Positions 1,136 to 63,711 of a stretch of 64,000 bases of DNA are shown one piece after another. The DNA comes from Trichosphaerium sp. ATCC 40318 (Eukaryota > Protista > Tubulinea), in assembly GCA_038496445.1 (NCBI GenBank), contig JALMLS010000150.1, positions 100,326-164,325 of the forward strand, read 5' to 3'. The stretch's first letter is position 1. Each line of letters begins with the position of its first letter. The translations under genes and the position numbers were made by a program. The notes under the pieces were generated by a model, which did not search any database, was not told where the DNA came from, and saw only the letters and a program-made list of their open reading frames with translations.

Positions 1136-2053
1136 TTAAAAATAAAGTGGACGTGTATCTTTTTTAGCCAAATAGTCATTGATGTGTAAGGCCCTACCCC
1201 AGGTTATACCTAATTCCTCAGCTGCTGCTTCTGTTATTTGTGTATGTTTTCCGAATACATATTTATCATCGATTGTAATGCTTCTAAGAGACTTCAAGTG
1301 TTTCAAACAAGAGTTCGTAATTTTAATACAACTATCAAGTTTCAGGTGTTCAAGATTTGTCAGGTGCATCAAACCTGAGTCTGTGACCATGTCACATTCC
1401 CTTATAAGAAGCTTTTTGACATTAGTCAGCAATCTGACACCATCATCTGTCATCATCCTTGGGTCTTGAGGTATTATATGAACTGAGTGTACACTCACAA
1501 GTTGTTTTAGCAGTTCTTCTTTTGGCTCAGAAAATGTAATTTGGTGGACGTTCTTTAGTTCACGTATCCCATCAACAGTAATGTTCTCACAATAGCGGAT
1601 ATCAATTGTATGTACGTATTTGAGTGCCTTCAACGAAATATCTGTTATAGGCGCAGACATCAAGCAAATGTTGTGAAGGCTACTTTTATCTAGCAATTGT
1701 ATATCCTTATCCGTAGTATTTGTAGGTAGAATTATAGACTGAACACCAGATAGACACTCCAAGTCCCTCTTTGATAGTTTACGTATTTCAGATAGAAAGA
1801 TAAGGAAACAATTGATTGTGGTGTTTTTAAGCAATGGACTTCCTTTTATAAATGAAAAATCTGAAGGTTTTTCTAATGTGATTCTATCAAAGCCAATATT
1901 ATTGCGAATGATATTGTTGAACACGTGGGAAACTGTGGTAGCCCTTATACGCTCTTTCTTTTCCAGGTAGCTTAAAATATGTGTTAACGTCTCTGGTGGG
2001 AGCGTTCTAAGCAAATAAACATGTTTTTCTGGCTTCCGACATTCTTGCGACAT
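1136..2053 (-). CDS. F-box/leucine-rich repeat protein (intronless)
   Basis: 305-aa ORF; F-box LRTLPPETLTHILSYL; Cys-containing LRRs (ITDISLKALKYVHTIDIRYCENIT, VTDSGLMHLTNLEHLKLDSCIKIT). Confidence 0.85.
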   Translation of the reverse strand: MSQECRKPEKHVYLLRTLPPETLTHILSYLEKKERIRATTVSHVFNNIIRNNIGFDRITLEKPSDFSFIKGSPLLKNTTINCFLIFLSEIRKLSKRDLECLSGVQSIILPTNTTDKDIQLLDKSSLHNICLMSAPITDISLKALKYVHTIDIRYCENITVDGIRELKNVHQITFSEPKEELLKQLVSVHSVHIIPQDPRMMTDDGVRLLTNVKKLLIRECDMVTDSGLMHLTNLEHLKLDSCIKITNSCLKHLKSLRSITIDDKYVFGKHTQITEAAAEELGITWGRALHINDYLAKKDTRPLYF

Positions 2054-31140: not shown

Positions 31141-34100
31141 CTAAGAATGATCTATCTTCAATATATCCTGCACTTCGTTTGTGATAGTAATATTCTTGTA
31201 TGTTTTTCTTAGGTAAAGCACGTTTGATGTATTGTCTAGCAATTGTTAACATTGGACACAGCCATAAAAGATAGCGTACTACAAAAAACAACAATAGGTA
31301 TTTTAGTCCATTTCTTGTTTTGCCTTATGCTTTTCACTAATATCTCTGCTGCTAGATCGTCTCCATCGCCTTTACGATAAGTGTTTGTGATTATACATAA
31401 CCTGTTGGTGTAGAATCCTCTAAACTTATGAAGCCATGCTAAAATCTCAGATGACGACTTCATAACCAACACCTTTATAAACTTTGTAAGTACAAATTTT
31501 TTTTATGATTTTCTCCAACCTCCGTCTTCTTTGGCCTTTTTTGTAAGAGCTTTACAATCTCCCTGTTCTCAAAAGAGATTTTATCGTCAACCCATAGGAC
31601 CATACATTTTGCTTCTCTATACTTGAGTTTATATTCATCCATATTGGTGCTATTTGTGGCTTTGTAATAGACAAGATATCTTGGAAGAATCTAACGGTTT
31701 AACAGTTGAAAAAATAATGTAAACAAAGGTTTGTACTTGGTTTTTGGAGAATAAAACAATCTCATCATAATCTGGTTTTATGTTGTAAGCGCAAGGATAT
31801 CCAGTGGATTTGTTTGTAATGACATAGTGTGAATCAAATCCTTTCTTAATATAGCATTAGCCTCATAGTTTTAATGTCATGATATTACCATGCATCCCTT
31901 CCCAAGTAGGCTTTTAGGATCGCCTGGAATAGGTTTTTCAGTAACTGGATACGGTTTTCCCAACATCAGCCATGATATTAACATGCATGGATTTTCTGGC
32001 GGGTCACCCCATTCAGCGTACTTCTTACCGAAAGAAACCTTTCAGTCAAAGAACTTTTATATCATAGGACAATATACCGCAATCAGGGTATTGAGTAAAG
32101 TATATACCATTTCCTGTATTAAAGCAATATCAGTTATACTACAATAAGTATTTTTATCATTGTACCATAGTACCCTGGATCTTTCTTGTTTTGAGTCTCA
32201 TGTGGCTCCCTAAAATTGCTCCATGCAATTTTATAGCTATTCTCCTTATAAAACATTATCAAAACAACAAGATTCCCAGTTTCCTTGTACCTCTGTTGTA
32301 CCATGGAATCCAGCAAGAAGATTGATCTGTTCATTTCCAGAAACACGCATTACATATCTCTTCAAATGATTCAAAGTCCATTCCTGAGCTTTGTGTGTAT
32401 CTTCATCTATTGCTACAGACTCAGTATTTTTACGCTCTGTATAAAAAAAATTAGAAATAAATGGGAAAAGGATGCTATACTTGCTTGGATCTTCAGAAAA
32501 AAGTTTTTGTACAAGTAATTCATATGTCGATTTAAAGTTAGCTTCAAGTTTTTGATTGTCAAAGAAAACTATCTTTTCTAATTCATAAAATGAATCGCTG
32601 TTAGTTCCCATAAACTTGTAAAACATATTCCTAGCCCTTAAATATTCATCATAACGTTCCTTCATTACATAAGAACTGACCTAAAACCATGCACTTACCA
32701 ATGTCTTCTCGTTACTTGTAAGTACAGTACAATACAACCCGGGATAGTTTTTATGTACATGCCATTTACCATGCTTAAAAAATTCTGCTCCATGCAAGCT
32801 GCTCCACAATTCATGGTTCTTCTCTTTCAACATAGGAAAGCCTTTTATCAAATGTTTTGCACTGACAACTACTTCTTAAGCAGAGTCAACTCAAACACTC
32901 TGTATTAAAATACTCACTTGTTCTCTTGCACTGATATGGAGTTTTTGGAGCATTAACAACTTGGCCGCTCTGTATCTTAATAGGACACAGCTGAATCGGT
33001 TTAATTTTCAATGGTTTTAAATATGGGTCAAGACTTTGCTGAACAAAAATTAACTATTGTTAATTGATACAAAAGTACCGTCCATAGCCATGGTGCTGTT
33101 CCTCTAATCACTACTACAATTTCATGGTTTATGTAGTACAATATAATGAGGTTGCCATAAAAATCATTCAACACAATTAAGTTTGAAAAGAGCCGGAAGT
33201 CTTTGTTCTGTAGTTCTATTTGGAAAAAAAAAAAGTAATTAGTATTGCTTTGTACTGGGTTAAACATACTCCGTAATCTTCTTTGAAGGTCATTAAAGAT
33301 ATCTACAGATATTTCTGGTGATATGAACTTATATGCTAAATACCTAGAAGCATGTGGCATGTGCTGATATGCACTAGGAAGTGACTAAGAAACTGAGTTA
33401 ATACAAGAACGTGATGTACTGCAGTACTATTTTTTGGCCATTCTCCTGTATAATAGTCTCCAAAATTTTGGTTGAGAATTTAGCCTTATTGGTTTGTACG
33501 AGAGACATTATTTTCCACGTTTTTGTTGATGTAGCCAAAGAATAAATGGCGGGTAGGTCAAATTGGCTTTTCTTTTTTCTTTGAACTAAGCTGACATGTT
33601 GTTCATGTCCAGTCAAGGGCGGAAAGTACAACATATCAGCCCTTGGTAATAATGATATAATGATATACCCTCCAGAGCCGTAAATCATCTAGAAAAACTA
33701 ATGAATGGTTTGGAGAAGTAAAGTATAAAAATGTAAAAAAAAAAATGAGTACTTTTTCTTCTTTGGTCAAGCGAACACAAAACGACATCTTCACCAAGAA
33801 CTCCATAGCTTGCTTCACTTCAGATGGAGTACACTTTGGAAATATCTGAGATATTCGGTAGTTGACCTCTGTGTCAGTGAATACAGCACAATGATTTTGA
33901 CAGTTCTTTTTATACAATCTTTCCAAATGTTCTTTAGGTGCTAAAAACGAGCTCATAATATGAGATACAACTGGAGGATCTAAACACAACATATACGAAC
34001 ACTAGGTAGTATACTATTAGTTACTTTTTGGAGAAAGTAGTACCTCATCAAACATTATAGTGCCAATAGAATGCAGGTAGTTCAAAGACGCAACCAGCTC

Positions 34101-36350
34101 TATGGGAGCCATTTTACAAAATGAAGGTAATAGTTCAATCACTTGCTTGCTATTATAGAAGTTATTCAGGTCATAAATCTATACTTACACTGATATGATG
34201 ATATCCTTTAGTCTATTTTTTTGAACTACAATGTTTTCAAGAGCTGTTTTTATGCTGATGTATAACGTTGGCACTTTTGGGTATTGAGACTTCATATATT
34301 TTGATTGCAACTCCAATATTTTTACAAGAGCAGAAATACCTAATTACCAGGTTAAGAATTTAGTAATTGGGTACTACGTACCTTCTATGCACAAAGTACA
34401 ATAAAACGATGGTTTAATTGAGCGTAAGAGTTTTTCATTGGCTTGTAGATCTCCAACAAAGGCATCCCGTTTAGATCCATAAGCAATCACAGAGTAAAGC
34501 TTCGGATCTTGTCCTTTTAGAACATTACCGAGAGTTTTAAACCAGTGTTCTAACTGCTCTTGTTGCTCCGCAATTGACAGAGACAAGTCAACCTACACGT
34601 TAAACTTGGTAAGTAAATAAATCCAAAACTGTGAAAACGTACAACAATGATATAAATAGCAAGTTGCTTAGTGAAAAAATACTTATGTAAACCCTTGTAC
34701 TCTATCTGTCCAGCAAAGTCCAATACTGTGTACGTAATACCACCAAACCTAGAGTATCTAAATGTATTCCTTTCATACCTTTCACACGCACGTGAGATAG
34801 GAAGTATCAAAACCTACTGTTGAAACAGTGCTGACGTTTTTTTCACCTGCCAAAGACTTTATCAGTGTCGTTTTGCCTTTTAAAAATGAGTCATCGAAGT
34901 GTTTACACTGTCTAAAGTACCTGATCCGCCATGGCCGACAACTAATAGTTTTGCGCCCAATCGCTTGATGTAATCATATTTCTCGCGATTTATTCCGTCT
35001 ACAATCAGTGGTAGCTTACTAGTAGACAAGCTATGACCAGACCAAAATAATGTTTGAAAACGTTGTTTCGATAGCTGGTGTATTTTTACTGATATCACAC
35101 GCATTCCTGAAACATTCCGTGCCATGTTAGTGACTAAAAAAAGTTATAAGTAAGTAGTACTTCTAGGGAGATAAGTGAAACATACCATGATGCAATGATA
35201 TTTCACTATCGTTTCTACATAGATCATATACAAAGAGAATATCACATGTGCAATTTGATATGCAGTTATCCCGATGTTGTTTAATCCATTTAAAGACTTT
35301 TTGGTAGTGTTTTTTAGAATAAACTTCAAAAACTAAAGACATTCCACAATGAGATCTTAGTCTAAGTCTAATACGCTCTGCTTCTTGTTCATCGACAATA
35401 AACTTTGTTTTTTTTCCAAAACAATCATTTAGGTTTTTAAAATATTCAAAATCTTCTGAATATACCCATACTTTAACATCCTTACAGGAGATCTTAGGCA
35501 AAGCGGGTTGGATATTATCAATATTGATAAAAAAAGAAGCTTGATCAGGCTTCCCAGCGATGCAAGTCTTCTGTTTAGTGCTGAGAAACTGACCTCTTCT
35601 AAAGTACCCAATGTACTTACTACCGTCTGGCCAATAATACTCTCCAGCACCATGACGCTCACCGCCTAAGAAGCTACCTTTATACCTGCGACCATCTGGC
35701 CAACTTTTCTCTCCAATACCACAAAACTCGTCGTTCATAAACTGTCCCTTGTATTTACGACCATCTGGCCAATAGTACTCCCCAGTGCCATGAAACTTAT
35801 CCGCCAAAAATAGGCCGACATACTTAGTACCATCTGGCCAGCGGTACTCTCCGGCGCCATTAAACTTACCATCCAAAAAGTCTCCTTTGTATCTACGGTC
35901 ACCTGACAAAAACTTCTCTCCACTGCCAGTCATCTTGTGATCTATGAAATTACCTATGTACTTGACACCGTCAGGCCAAGTTAACTCTCCAATACCATGA
36001 AAATTCCCATCCAAGAAGTGACCGACATACTCGGTACCATCTGTCCAAGACTTTGTTCCTTTGCCTGTCATCTTATTATCCACAAATTCTCCTTTGTATT
36101 TGCGACCGTCACTCCAATAATACTCACCTGTGCCGTTAAAATTGCCATTCAAAAAGGTTCCTATGTATTTATTTCCATTTGGTAATATTAGGCAGCCTTT
36201 ACCACTTCTTTCGCCGTTTTTAATAGTTCCCTTGTATAAACTGCCATTTGGAAGCGTTGTTTCTTCTAAAGAGCATCACATTGCTAATCACTGTATCTGT
36301 TACTTACTGTAGTCACTATTGGTAATATCCGCGATCAAAGCGTGAGACAT
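31141..36350 (-). CDS. Roco-family protein: MORN repeats + Roc-COR + PARP-like ADP-ribosyltransferase + pseudo-receiver domain (multi-exon)
   Basis: 9-10 MORN repeats; Roc KLLVVGHGGSGKTT, STVG, DFAGQIEYKGLHKYFFT, GSKRD; COR LNYLHSIGTIMF..LCLDP; ART FHGT, DPGYYGNGIYFTQ, LMLGKPYPV, GFDSHYV, YDEIVLF..QILPRYLVYY; REC-like VLWVDD..IITN..IPIVVFC. Confidence 0.8.
35590..36245 (-). repeat. MORN repeat array (23-aa/69-bp period)
   Basis: YxGxFxxGxxxGxGxxxWPDG repeated nine times plus a partial unit. Confidence 0.92.
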
Positions 36351-36934
36351 GGATGGAGACTAAAGAAATGGCTAAAGCACGTGACTTTTTGCTGAAACAA
36401 AACTAGTTAGCTAAAATTGTATTCATACATACAAAACCTAAATCTCGTATTGTAGCGCCTCTCTTTTGTCAGCTGTTTACTTGCTACAGGCATGTAAATC
36501 ATTAGTCGAGCTGGTTATTTATTTGCGAACATCACGTGGTTCATAAAGTGGAAGATGGCATCTTTTCATAGAAGTAAGACCCACAAACCTTCGACGTGCA
36601 CCCATAAGTTCGGTGGGAAATGGCGTAGAAACTCAGCCATTCCCAACGATTTCGTGGCGCTAATCACCGAGTTAAAACTGTGTAATAGCACCAATAAACT
36701 TGTCTGTTCTCAGTGTTGCATAAAGTAGTCAATGACGTAACGGTACAAATGCAGGTAGTTTGTTATGTGAATAAAATGTACAGTGGAATACACTTTTTGA
36801 GATTTTCAACGTTTTACATTAAAGAGCTGTTCATGCGACACTGTAGTAAATATTCACTAATCAGAAAAGGAGTTGACTTAAAGCTCCTTAAACGACGGTT
36901 ACTAAAAATACAAACACAACTCTACAACACAAAC

Positions 36935-38033
36935 ATGACAGCCATGGCAGAGTTTCCTCCTGAGATATTAAACCATATTTTTTCTTTCCTAGATGCTCAT
37001 TCAATGCTTTCGTACGTACAGGTACAGAAATGATTGAAAAATCAATCAATAACCCAACTAAACAGGTTTCAGCGGCCTTCAACGTCATAGATAACCCCCA
37101 CACATGGAGAAACGCTCACGAAGCGCGTTTCGGAGTAATAAAAGACGCAAGCGCCGAAACAAACTACAAAAAGGCGTATTGTACCTCTAGTACGTTTACT
37201 ATGGCGTAAAAAAGTGGTGTTTACGCTTTACATCGGTTTCCTTATTCCTAACGAGAACCGTTATTAATCGCGTTGTAGGTGACCCAAGATTACCAGCAGA
37301 GAAGATGTGGATAGTTCACTTGGGTAATAATAACTACTGGACTATAAACGAAGAAAAAACAGCGCTGTCTGGTAAAGCAGCACGCCTGAATACTGTTTGT
37401 TGGGTTCAATTCGAAGGAGACAAAAATGGCATTGAACCAGGTTAGTTTTTTCATTTTTTCCAAATCTCTGAATGTACGCTCATAATTTACGTTATTAAAT
37501 GGTCGTGTAGGTGTCTATGATGTAGTTTATAGAATGAAATTTGATAACAGAGAATCAGGAAACTTGGACTGCACATGGAAAGCAAAGCCAACACATGGTA
37601 ATAGTCATACTCATTTTTTCTTATTTTTTTCGCTTCTTGTCGCTTTACAATTGTTGTTTTGATGCCAACGGCGTTTATGATGATTGTGTTATATACCTTA
37701 ATTTAATGACTATAAATAGGTACTGAAATGGTACGCAAGGTGGCAAAGTATGGATACAAATTAAAAAAACAAGATTATAAAGACTGGTTTTATTGGCGCC
37801 CTGGTCAAATCACTGTTACAAAGACTAGCAGTGTCCATTTTGCCAACTTGGGCAATCAACCCTACTGGGTCTCAGGCTGGGTATGTATTACTTTAAATTT
37901 TGTTGTGCAAATGACTTTACCCACTAAGTTCTTTTCTTCGTTATTATTTGGCACTCAAGCAATCTGTTTTCTGACTTTGTTTTTAGCTTGTAGACTATGT
38001 AGCACTTGTAACTCCAGGTTTGTTACACAATGA
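36935..38033 (+). CDS. F-box protein with PP2/Nictaba-like lectin domain
   Basis: F-box EFPPEILNHIFSFLD; MWIVHLGNNNYW, AARLNTVCWVQFEG, PGVYDVVYRMK, terminal GWLVDYVAL match the phloem-protein-2 pattern. Confidence 0.75.
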
Positions 38034-39893: not shown

Positions 39894-41426
39894 GTGTATA
39901 GTGCGTTGAAAGTATTGAGTGTACTCTTTAATGTACCTCCTAGTGTCTGTAGCTGTTTAATCCTGCTTATGTCAGTACTGTATTGCAATGCGTCGTTTTG
40001 CTCTGGACAAGTGAATTGCATGGGCTGTTTGCAAAATAGCAGTTGTGTTTGGTGTAGCGACCCGCCAACTTGCTCTGACGCCTTTAAACCATCTTGTTCA
40101 TGCAATGGAGGCTGTAAAAACTGTTTAAGACAAGATATTTCCGAATGCCCAGCAAACTACAAGCAATGCTCTTCATACACAAATTGTGAGTCTTGTGCTA
40201 ACGACACGGCATGCGGATGGAGCGTAACTGATAGTAAATGCACTTACGGGGATAAAAATGGAGCATGCGATTACTATTACGGTGGTAAATGTGACGGCAG
40301 CGCATCACCAAGTTATTCATGGCAGTATGGGAAAAATGCCAAATGCCCAAGATCCAACGGAAAGTGTAGCCAATATCTCAACTGTTTGGGTTGTACAGAG
40401 GATCCAGCTTGTGGATGGAATGTAAATACTGTAGAATGTACAGCTGGAAACTATTATGGAGCTTGTAATTCAAACGATGATCATCAATGTAGTGGAGGAG
40501 CTACTCCGATTCACTATTGGCAGTATGTACGTCTGCTTCAATTGTACATTGTTCAAAGTAGTCTTATATCTTTGCAAGGGACCAACGGCTATTTGCCCGA
40601 AAAGCTACAGCAAGTGAAAATAAATTTAAGAGTCTGTATTAATGGTAGTGCAATAGGTAGTTGTGATCAATATCTAAACTGTGGTGATTGTGCAAAAGAT
40701 GCTGCTTGTGGTTGGAACGTTGTAGGTAAGTGTACACGTACTCCGACAACTTGTTGTTTCAAATACCATAGCACAAGTTTACTTAATGCCTAGATGAAAC
40801 GTGTATGTCAGGTGATGTAAATGGATCTTGCGTTGCAGCAAATGATGAAGTCTGCCCGGGAACAGGTATGATTGTAGAACGAGTTCAATATTCTTAAAAG
40901 AACTTTAGCTGGTAAAGGCTACAACTGGCGTTTTGCAGAGTCACAATGCCCAAAAAATAATCAACCATGTTCTCAATATTTTGACTGTCAGTCTTGTGCT
41001 GAAGACAACTCTTGCGGATGGAACGTTTTCAGTAAGTATTTTTGTTGACATTGTTAAACTATGTTTATAACATTGAAATAGAGCAAGCATGCGTAGAAGG
41101 AAGCTCTAAAGGTGCATGCGTGCAAGACGATCACTGTACAGGTACACGTGATATTATTAGTATGTTATACTAACCAGAAGAATATAGGATCTGCGTCAGA
41201 AAACGCTTATTGGCAGCAAGGCATTTTTGCAATTTGTCCAAAGAATCATGGTACTTGTCAACAATACAATAGTTGTTCAAGTTGCACTAAAGATATTGCT
41301 TGTGGATGGAATTCACAGACTTCTGTATGTTTATCTGGAGACTTTAAAGGTGCTTGTAATGCCTATACTCAACCAGATGCTAAACACTGGTTCTTCGGTT
41401 CCTGTGATGCTACTTCAATAATATAG
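39894..41426 (+). CDS. Secreted Cys-rich PSI-repeat protein (start uncertain)
   Basis: About 6 repeats of CSxYxNCxxCxxDxACGW...C; no TM; TAG 41424-41426. Confidence 0.8.
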
Positions 41427-62552: not shown

Positions 62553-62886
62553 TTTTCTGGGATGTGTTGCTACTTCAAATCCTCGTTCAATTGTGTGCCT
62601 ACTATTCAGAGAATTATGCGTAAGGAAGTCAATCAATACTGGTTAAGCCAAGTATTGTTATTCTGCAATTTACTCGTTATTAGCGTGTTGTGCGATAGTT
62701 GGGAACGGTACGTAATATAACGTAAAAGCGCTTTCTAAAACGCTATACGCTCATTCTACTTTATTTCCTTTGCTAGTATCGCGTATTACAAGCGTACTCA
62801 TAATCTAGGAGCTGTTTTTTGCGTGTTTGAACATGGTAGTGACTAACACACTTTTCTTTAGTCGCTTGGAGCAAACTACCAAGAGA

Positions 62887-63711
62887 ATGAGTTCTTCGAG
62901 TTTGCTTGATCTTCCTTGTGAGCTTCAAAAGTATATATGCACGTTCGACATCGAAGCATTCACAAAGTTCCATACACTTTCAAAAAGAGCAGCTTTCAAC
63001 ACGCATTTTGACGAAAGACTAGAACGAAAAGGAAAATGGATATCATGGTACAAAAGTGGAAAGGTATGTACCCATGAATACGTATGGAATGGGTTGAGCA
63101 CATCGTGGCATGAGAACGGACAGCTCATGGAAGAGACTATGATAGTTGATGGTCAACTCAATGGTGAAAGCAAAGAGTGGTATGATAATGGACAACTTAA
63201 GGTACATGCCATGTATGTTGATGATAAACGACATGATGAATACAAAGAGTGGCATGAAAATGGACAACTCAAAGAACATAGTTCATGGGTTGATGACAAC
63301 CAAACTGGTGCATTTAAAGAATGGTATAGTAGTGGACAACTGAAAACACAGAACACATGGGTTGAGGGTCAGCTCCAAGGTGATTTCAAAAAGTGGTATG
63401 AAAATGGGCAACTTGAGGCACAAAGCACGTGGGTTGATGATAGACGAAATGGTGAATACAGGAAGTGGTATGAGAATGGTCAACTTATGCTACGGGAAAT
63501 GTTGGTTGATGGCAAGAAAAACGGAGATTTCAGTGTGTGGTATAAACATGGGATATGTAAGGTAGAAAGTACATGGGTTAATGGTAAACAAAATGGTACT
63601 GAAAAGCAGTGGTATGAAAATGGCCAACTTGCTGTACAAAGCACATGGGTTGATGATAAAAGGAAAGAATATAAAATGTGGGATACAGAAGGGCGACTTG
63701 AATATCCTTAA
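62887..63711 (+). CDS. F-box-like + MORN-variant (YwqK-like) repeat protein, intronless
   Basis: LLDLPCELQKYICTFD; about 8 repeats of 24 aa WYENGQL...WVD...G.YKE. Confidence 0.85.
   Translation: MSSSSLLDLPCELQKYICTFDIEAFTKFHTLSKRAAFNTHFDERLERKGKWISWYKSGKVCTHEYVWNGLSTSWHENGQLMEETMIVDGQLNGESKEWYDNGQLKVHAMYVDDKRHDEYKEWHENGQLKEHSSWVDDNQTGAFKEWYSSGQLKTQNTWVEGQLQGDFKKWYENGQLEAQSTWVDDRRNGEYRKWYENGQLMLREMLVDGKKNGDFSVWYKHGICKVESTWVNGKQNGTEKQWYENGQLAVQSTWVDDKRKEYKMWDTEGRLEYP

Follow-up and report, generated by a model that had tools for sequence, protein, structure and literature searches.

A predicted Roco-family gene with a PARP-type ADP-ribosyltransferase domain in the amoeba Trichosphaerium sp. 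ATCC 40318

The gene and its relatives

The 64,000-nucleotide stretch analyzed here, hereafter called the window, comprises positions 100,326 to 164,325 of contig JALMLS010000150.1 (C138) from Trichosphaerium sp. ATCC 40318 (assembly GCA_038496445.1, 70.3 Mb, ~37% G+C) and consists of eukaryotic DNA. On its minus strand, from 36350 to 31141, the open reading frame (ORF) track and direct reading of the DNA reveal short open frames in shifting phases. Joined by splicing, these frames apparently make up one intact, protein-coding gene in a protist rich in introns. The predicted protein very probably has the domain architecture MORN-Roc-COR-preART-ART-pseudo-receiver, where ART denotes an ADP-ribosyltransferase domain, here of the PARP type. 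The features of this Roco-PARP gene are listed below, with amino acid (aa) positions of the predicted protein.

31141..36350, minus strand: whole Roco-PARP gene, 21 exons, 20 GT-AG introns of 31-64 nt, 1,440 codons and a TAG stop
35586..36236, minus strand: MORN array, aa 25-241, made of nine full units of 23 aa and a partial tenth (Pfam PF02493, E 5.6e-40, 8 stretches; regular-expression count)
34967..35585, minus strand: MORN-to-Roc region, aa 242-430 (~190 aa), including the intron 35134-35185 (paralogue-conserved blocks)
34254..34966, minus strand: Roc G domain, aa 431-610 (G1, G3 and G4 motifs; BLASTP; homologues pass the Pfam Roc cut-off)
34869-34936, minus strand: G1 motif GHGGSGKT, split by an intron
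34706-34720, minus strand: G3 motif DFAGQ (motif search)
34464-34475, minus strand: G4 motif SKRD (motif search)
32873..34253, minus strand: COR region, aa 611-980, with the COR-A core LNYLHSIG...CLDPPVVSHIMSSF (aa 654-747); COR-B placed by position only
32354..32872, minus strand: pre-ART segment, aa 981-1140, Trp-rich and then helical (ERYDEYLRARNMFY ... RVSGNEQINL), kept in 70 genomic matches and in foreign homologues
31655..32353, minus strand: predicted PARP-type ART core, aa 1141-1300 (profile against PARP4, Pfam PF00644 in homologues, homologue model)
~32303, minus strand: triad residue His1157 (FHGT)
~32100, minus strand: triad residue Tyr1192 (GYYGNGIYF)
~31762, minus strand: triad residue Glu1280 (YDEIVLF)
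32024..32054, minus strand: shortest intron, inside the ART domain, 31 nt, GT..AG (DNA reading and paralogue comparison); the frame relies on it
31144..31654, minus strand: predicted CheY-fold pseudo-receiver, aa 1301-1440, with beta1 LWVDD, beta3 IITN, then YRKGDGD, and beta4 VVFC

Introns were chosen by listing the GT..AG joins between neighboring frames, and ties were settled by residues conserved among paralogues. By direct reading of the DNA, the start codon ATG lies at 36350-36348 and the stop codon TAG at 31143-31141. The first intron (42 nt, GTAAGT..TTTAG) follows 43 coding bases, and the last (44 nt) stands just ahead of the terminal exon with the TAG stop. Two diagnostic motifs are interrupted by introns: the P-loop GHGGS/GKT by 44 nt (34920-34877) and GYY/GNGIYF by 52 nt. 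Translation of the splice model gives a single frame of 1,440 aa with 0 internal stops. The 31-nt intron was the sole canonical frame-preserving option found at that point. One intron of the model has two alternative donors, 34785 and 34791, and an optional extra in-frame intron of 36 nt in exon 11 would drop 12 residues with no other effect.

When the pre-ART exon of a paralogue was used to query 1.84 billion representative proteins, 25 relatives were returned. The best identity was 40%, so this set holds no close copy. P0043 and P0045 were added by further searches. The relatives used in the comparisons below include the following.

P0006: 1,131 aa, from a Logan assembly; Pfam Roc and PARP
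P0016: 1,508 aa, Clydonella sp. ATCC 50884 (EP01094_P000974, a transcriptome ORF); Pfam Ankyrin, Roc and PARP, in the order Ank-Roc-COR-PARP-REC (REC, receiver)
P0019: 1,065 aa, Mastigamoeba balamuthi m51a1_g10957; Pfam PARP above the cut-off, Roc below threshold (22.7 versus 27 bits)
P0043: a metagenomic/Logan protein; Roc and PARP by Pfam
P0045: a metagenomic/Logan protein; Roc passes the Pfam cut-off, PARP and COR-B fall short of it
P0021 and P0023: 474-485 aa, stand-alone preART-PARP-C-terminal (receiver) proteins

The unnamed Roc-COR-PARP-receiver proteins in this set are collinear with the window protein from the Roc domain through the receiver-like domain at the C-terminus and share with it the motifs SGNE.INL..G.HG, GIYFTQ, DSH and DEIVVF..Q.LPR. 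They differ from it in sequence (24-40% identity) and in their N-terminal repeats, which are ankyrin or absent, in contrast to the MORN repeats of the window protein. In BLASTP comparisons with P0006, aa 436-773 of the window protein match the Roc-COR part (E 9e-22), and aa 895-1436 match from late COR to the final residues (E 7e-72). Because these Roc-COR-PARP matches elsewhere are collinear and of such strength, the splice model stands far above chance. The main argument for a single gene is that the Roc-COR-preART-PARP-C-terminal module occurs as one polypeptide in several organisms. It is very improbable that two adjoining genes, one for MORN-Roc-COR and one for PARP-receiver, have been wrongly joined here. 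The stand-alone proteins P0021 and P0023 would fit such an arrangement. However, the exons for COR and ART are parted by introns of mere 39-43 nt with one continuous frame and have their junctions at 33078/33039 and 32917/32875, and P0006, P0019, P0016 and P0043 are single ORFs with both parts, the Clydonella ORF coming from an assembled transcript. The paralogous loci that were fetched whole also show the domains in the same order and spacing, apart from a few copies that lack some parts.

A first-pass annotation of the same DNA had read the exon fragments as one gene with nine or ten MORN units, a Roc domain marked by GHGGSGKT and DFAGQ, a COR region behind it, an ART with the triad motifs FHGT, GYYGNGIYF and YDEIVLF, and a receiver-like domain. 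All of these landmarks were recovered at the positions it had given, with two refinements: a G4 motif is also present, and the last domain is more exactly termed a pseudo-receiver.

One of the metagenomic matches lies on an ENA contig (NODE_5233 of ERZ15610571; L041:2472-9625). Next to SRR1, GILT and DG1062_N genes, this contig carries ankyrin (737 aa), faint Roc (693 aa) and PARP (860 aa) frames that follow one another head to tail on a single strand. These frames probably represent a single Ank-Roc-COR-PARP gene of another amoebozoan that was split at introns in gene calling.

Roc, COR and the N-terminal repeats

The predicted protein contains a Ras-like G domain of the Roc type, in which the motifs G1, G3 and G4 are intact. 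For this part of the gene, Pfam searches with single window exons gave at best a Roc match of E 0.004 (on one 35-aa exon) and an Arf match of E 0.022. The spliced protein is more informative in BLASTP: it matches P0016 with E 2e-26, the bona fide LRR-Roc-COR-A-COR-B-kinase protein P0046 with E 6e-10 in an alignment that runs from Roc into COR-A, and Roco proteins of Capsaspora with ~1e-5.

A COR region directly C-terminal to Roc is recognized through its COR-A part, by profile comparison and by the model of a homologue. When the Roc domain was removed, hhalign comparison of the family with bona fide Roco proteins gave a probability of 87% and E 4.1e-6 over aa 654-747, a match that falls within the Pfam COR-A region of P0046. 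The AlphaFold model of residues 365-985 of Clydonella P0016 has a predicted template modeling score (pTM) of 0.70; its quality is good for Roc and COR-A but poor past approximately model residue 390. It resembles the following Roco structures.

LRRK1: Z 21.5, 391 residues aligned
LRRK2: Z 20.9, 399 residues aligned
Methanosarcina barkeri Roco2 RocCOR: Z 19.7, 298 residues aligned
Chlorobium tepidum Roco: Z 17.8, 334 residues aligned

Plain small GTPases reach Z 15-19 against the same model and cover its first 200 residues, that is, the Roc domain only. At E 0.001, Pfam did not detect COR in the homologues, and searching the PDB with a profile for COR gave a blank result. COR-B has a low predicted local distance difference test score (pLDDT) in the homologue model, and the sole Pfam COR-B hit, in P0045, is below threshold. 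By these sequence and model comparisons, Roc and COR-A are shown in the predicted window protein; COR-B is likely to be present as well.

The arrangement of Roc followed directly by COR is the feature that the window protein shares with the Roco family, including LRRK1 and LRRK2, the Dictyostelium Roco kinases, and the proteins from C. tepidum and M. barkeri. It differs from them in that no LRR, kinase, death or WD40 domain was detected, with MORN repeats in front and an ART and a pseudo-receiver behind. The first-pass description of the protein as kinase-less agrees with the Pfam result, which gave no kinase hit on the window exons, too short to prove absence; the ART stands where known relatives carry the kinase. 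The topologies given in the available part of a review on Roco proteins are LRR-RocCOR, LRR-RocCOR-kinase and the DAPK1 types, none of which fits the window protein. PARP, ADP-ribosylation and MORN are unmentioned in that part, and the characterized Roco proteins that it gives include none with an ART output, as the first-pass annotation had also said.

The MORN array keeps a strict period of 23 aa. Full units begin at aa 25, 48, 71 and so on to 209 (ending at aa 231), and the partial tenth begins at aa 232. It is exon 2 that carries the Pfam MORN match. Repeats of this kind are better known as tethers to membranes or proteins than as sensors of ligands. Between the array and the Roc domain, paralogues keep the motifs IAGKPDQ, VFEVYSK, D-I/F-VFIYDLC..D.EISLH and T(N/T)MAR. 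This MORN-to-Roc region (aa 242-430) returned 0 matches in Pfam and 0 in the Atlas, and it was not seen in the homologues from other organisms. We also considered whether it might be a degenerate G domain; for this copy the idea was rejected, as hhalign against Roc gave a probability of 0.07%.

The ADP-ribosyltransferase and the pseudo-receiver

The assignment of the ART is based on an alignment of eight homologues with the window's own ART exons. The common blocks of this alignment are RVSGNE.INL..G.HG, DPG..G.GIYFTQ, LL.SW.L.G..YPV.E, DSH and DEIVVF.K.Q.LPR. Its profile matches the ART domain of PARP4 in the PDB with E 1.9e-9 and, more weakly, PARP2, PARP13 and PARP12. The His (HG), Tyr (GIY) and Glu (DE(I/F)VV) residues align with their PARP4 counterparts, so that the complete His-Tyr-Glu triad is found in the predicted window protein. 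On single window exons, Pfam matched neither PARP nor COR, Response_reg or protein kinase, the exons being too short to prove absence.

The fold was examined on the AlphaFold model of P0021 (mean pLDDT 80.7). Foldseek aligned this model with the ART of human PARP1 (E 3e-9, probability 1.00), and an exhaustive aligner matched residues 97-342 with tankyrase 2 (Z 15.2), PARP10 (Z 15.0), PARP13 (Z 15.0), TASOR (Z 14.7) and PARP4 (Z 14.6). A match to the PARP fold, which the first-pass annotation had named as a check on its proposal, was hence obtained, on a homologue. The window protein resembles PARP catalytic domains in its predicted ART fold and its aligned triad; the nearest by sequence is PARP4 (vault PARP, Clade 5), and the nearest by fold are tankyrase, PARP10 and PARP13. 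It differs from PARP proteins in that no BRCT, VIT, vWA, WGR, PARP regulatory or macro domain was detected and in that a predicted GTPase switch is fused to the ART.

Among the 26 surveyed paralogous loci (24 of them distinct), all 26 carry the His and 25 of 26 the Glu of the (D/N)EI(V/I)VF motif; the single exception is a copy without that part of the exon. This conservation bears on the idea that the ART is a pseudo-enzyme or a module that binds NAD or ADP-ribose, as in PARP13 and TASOR, and that the protein is a scaffold. The two pseudo-PARPs do rank among the top structural matches. However, the His, Tyr and Glu residues that are lost in such pseudo-PARPs are kept here, in the paralogues at the frequencies just given, and in foreign homologues too. 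We therefore regard a pseudo-enzyme as quite improbable.

Upstream of the ART core lies the Trp-rich stretch of the pre-ART segment (aa 981-1038, 32699-32872). In an Atlas fold search, its counterpart in the homologue model m4241cdee8d9f (residues 10-96) was aligned to the WWE domain in a cluster of PARP11; the whole hit to this WWE-PARP cluster spans model residues 10-349, with a template modeling (TM) score by hit of 0.50. Pfam found no WWE match. As a lead from this model only, a WWE-like ADP-ribose-binding module is possible.

The C-terminal domain of P0021 (residues 360-485) is modeled with a pLDDT of ~85-95 and has the (beta-alpha)5 fold of receiver domains. Its closest match is the receiver of PorX (Z 14.1, rmsd, i.e., root-mean-square deviation, 2.1 over 113 residues), followed by several dozen receivers of response regulators (Z 12-14, rmsd ~2.2 over ~113 residues). 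The window protein aligns along the whole length of this domain, by which route the fold is assigned to it. Pfam Response_reg matched neither the window exons, which are short, nor the homologues. Likeness to two-component receivers extends to an acidic pair after beta1 in the window copy (LWVDD). The difference lies at the end of beta3: at the site of the phospho-acceptor Asp of receivers, Thr-Asn occurs in all copies and homologues without exception, and the motif ITN.YRKGDGD is kept in all paralogues that possess the receiver exon. Since the phospho-acceptor Asp is missing, we class the domain as a pseudo-receiver and not as a response regulator; judged by its sequence, it is unable to act as a canonical phospho-receiver. 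This domain always accompanies the present type of PARP, even in the stand-alone PARP-receiver proteins.

The accessible parts of two surveys of the PARP superfamily describe many fusions, none of them with Roc, a GTPase or a receiver. The published amoebozoan expansions of Clade 5 PARPs are, in the text available, fused to 14-3-3, ubiquitin-related and actin domains, not to Roc. A full-text literature search, with subscription journals outside its coverage, found no description of a Roc-COR-PARP protein. The view of the first-pass annotation that the architecture is unfamiliar can be upheld for the MORN front end, which was seen in this genome only among the few relatives found. It cannot be upheld for the Roc-COR-PARP-receiver core, which is already public, though unnamed, in Clydonella, Mastigamoeba and metagenomes.

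Possible function and the gene family

We consider it probable that the gene encodes a member of the Roco family, 1,440 aa long, with a PARP-type ADP-ribosyltransferase as its output instead of a kinase. Given that Roc-COR switches a neighboring enzyme in established Roco proteins, that the ART is the only candidate output here and that MORN repeats are known tethers, we prefer to read the protein as a GTP-gated ADP-ribosyltransferase that acts at a membrane. In such a protein, the MORN array would place the polypeptide on a membrane or on a partner. If it works as in LRRK2 and the bacterial family members, the Roc-COR tandem would cycle between the GTP and GDP states with altered dimerization, and its conformational switch would gate the downstream ART. 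The ART would spend NAD+ (nicotinamide adenine dinucleotide) to ADP-ribosylate a target or itself, and the pseudo-receiver may serve as a regulatory or dimerization module. The available part of the Roco review describes Roc-COR, in LRRK2 and in Roco proteins of bacteria, as a switch of conformation and dimerization that depends on the nucleotide and controls the neighboring catalytic domain. By this analogy, the chances that the window protein performs GTP-gated ADP-ribosylation appear evenly balanced.

Several points weigh against this assignment. The gene model is predicted from the DNA sequence, and one of its introns (32054-32024) is just 31 nt long. The evidence for the PARP, COR and receiver folds derives from homologues at 24-30% identity. 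COR-B is poorly modeled, and sequence comparison did not detect it. The coupling of the GTP state to ART activity would be pure analogy. Finally, the triad by itself shows neither activity nor the type of product. PARP3 and PARP4 carry His-Tyr-Glu yet act as mono-transferases, and mono- and poly-ADP-ribose are therefore not distinguishable from these residues.

Roco proteins have been studied chiefly for LRRK2, and how Roc-COR controls a neighboring enzyme is still debated. The same switch wired to an ART would offer an independent natural system in which to study the signal that Roc-COR passes on. The PARP superfamily, for which the available parts of the surveys record no GTPase fusion, would also gain a member regulated by GTP. 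The biological role of the protein could lie in signaling or in conflict.

Observations that bear on this role come from the family to which the gene belongs. The pre-ART exon has 70 matches in the genome. The receiver exon has at least 42 (41 besides the window gene) on 26 contigs, 3 of them with stops; contig C3 alone holds 10, of which 7 lie in ~127 kb. The window gene is a distinct lineage, with a best paralogue identity of 75% in the most conserved exon and ~35-60% elsewhere. From copy to copy, the number of MORN units ranges from 1-3 recognizable to 11 or more, and a few copies have no MORN region. The MORN and MORN-to-Roc regions are the most divergent among paralogues. Ratios of nonsynonymous to synonymous substitution (dN/dS) were estimated by a rough Nei-Gojobori procedure from eight independent paralogue pairs, the window protein serving as guide for the codon alignment; read-through into introns and gene conversion could bias the values.

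MORN: 0.63
MORN-to-Roc region: 0.85
Roc: 0.60
COR: 0.52
Pre-ART: 0.47
ART: 0.57
Receiver: 0.44

All of these ratios are below 1, fairly high for enzymes, with the top values at the N-terminus. Because the method is crude, we read them just as a sign of constrained, fast-evolving domains; domain-wide positive selection is not demonstrated, and we do not claim strong purifying selection either.

A family of this kind could be a set of innate-immune or conflict receptors that work like NLRs, in which the repeats sense a virus or an intracellular bacterium, Roc-COR oligomerizes, and the ART depletes NAD+ or ADP-ribosylates targets of the invader or the host. Consistent with this idea are the number and partial clustering of the copies, the stop-bearing or truncated state of some of them, and transposase-like ORFs (by translation reading only) ahead of one. 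The N-terminal repeats also vary, from MORN x3 to x11 or more in this genome to ankyrin elsewhere, and the N-terminal parts diverge the most (dN/dS of 0.63-0.85 compared with 0.44-0.60 in the other domains). Several vertebrate PARPs act in defense against viruses, and effectors that consume NAD are a common feature of immunity. Against it stand the ratios below 1 in every domain, the better-known role of MORN as a tether, and the PADLOC defense models, which matched nothing but the ankyrin repeats of the Clydonella protein. Pfam found no STAND NTPase (NACHT or NB-ARC) on any window exon, these being short, or on any homologue. In Dictyostelium, the expanded Roco family serves signaling, according to the part of the Roco review available. 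We regard an immune receptor set as unlikely. The first-pass annotation had drawn a parallel to NLR and STAND proteins. Its shared logic holds as an analogy, in that repeats, a switch governed by nucleotides and an effector are combined in one polypeptide of a large, partly clustered family, but the switch itself is a predicted Ras-like Roc GTPase and not a NACHT or NB-ARC STAND ATPase. A shade more doubtful still is the specific proposal, made by analogy, of an immune-receptor class built on a Roco GTPase in place of a STAND ATPase, in which a diversifying MORN or ankyrin sensor would trigger GTP-dependent assembly and PARP-type NAD+ depletion or ADP-ribosylation of invader or host targets in amoebae exposed to giant viruses and intracellular bacteria. 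If true, it would describe a receptor class without a STAND module.

In a family with birth and death of copies, the window gene might also be a non-functional or unexpressed paralogue despite its open frame. The ART frame hangs on the shortest intron of the gene, the family has broken members, and dN/dS is fairly high throughout. In contrast, 1,440 codons are free of stops over 21 exons with GT-AG at all introns, and the G motifs, the His-Tyr-Glu triad and the conserved receiver motifs are all intact. A dead copy is thus improbable. Taken by itself, the locus is of modest value, being one of ~40 paralogues with relatives in other amoebae.

Several loci of the family have features of their own. 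At L011:6363-6653 (C206; GIYFTQYPDCG-KYAEW), the homologous ART intron has no in-phase GT donor, and a 45-nt GC..AG intron would fit; in L035, the same intron is located elsewhere. Members of the family thus differ in the positions and types of their introns. The transposase-like ORFs mentioned above (L012:453-2620, C194) precede a paralogue whose MORN region is cut to one unit, and they occupy the site of the MORN repeats of other copies. Two long frames, Cys-rich at the start and DDE-like in appearance (L007:2361-3370, C590), lie just 3' of a paralogue whose frame continues past the His motif; they may be another mobile element beside a family member.

Elsewhere in the window, a 294-aa frame at 62827-63711 (plus strand) has an F-box-like start (LLDLPCELQKYICTF) followed by ~10 WYENGQL-type MORN/YwqK-like repeats and represents an unrelated second protein of the MORN kind. 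F-box-like genes lie at 1136-2053 (minus strand) and 36713-37033 (plus strand), one of them with LRR-like repeats. The start of the latter, on the opposite strand, lies only ~360 bp away from the upstream end of the Roco-PARP gene, and the two may have a common promoter region. A Cys-rich frame of 299 aa at 39894-40793 (plus strand) shows a repeated C..C..D..CGW pattern, PSI-domain-like, behind a hydrophobic start.

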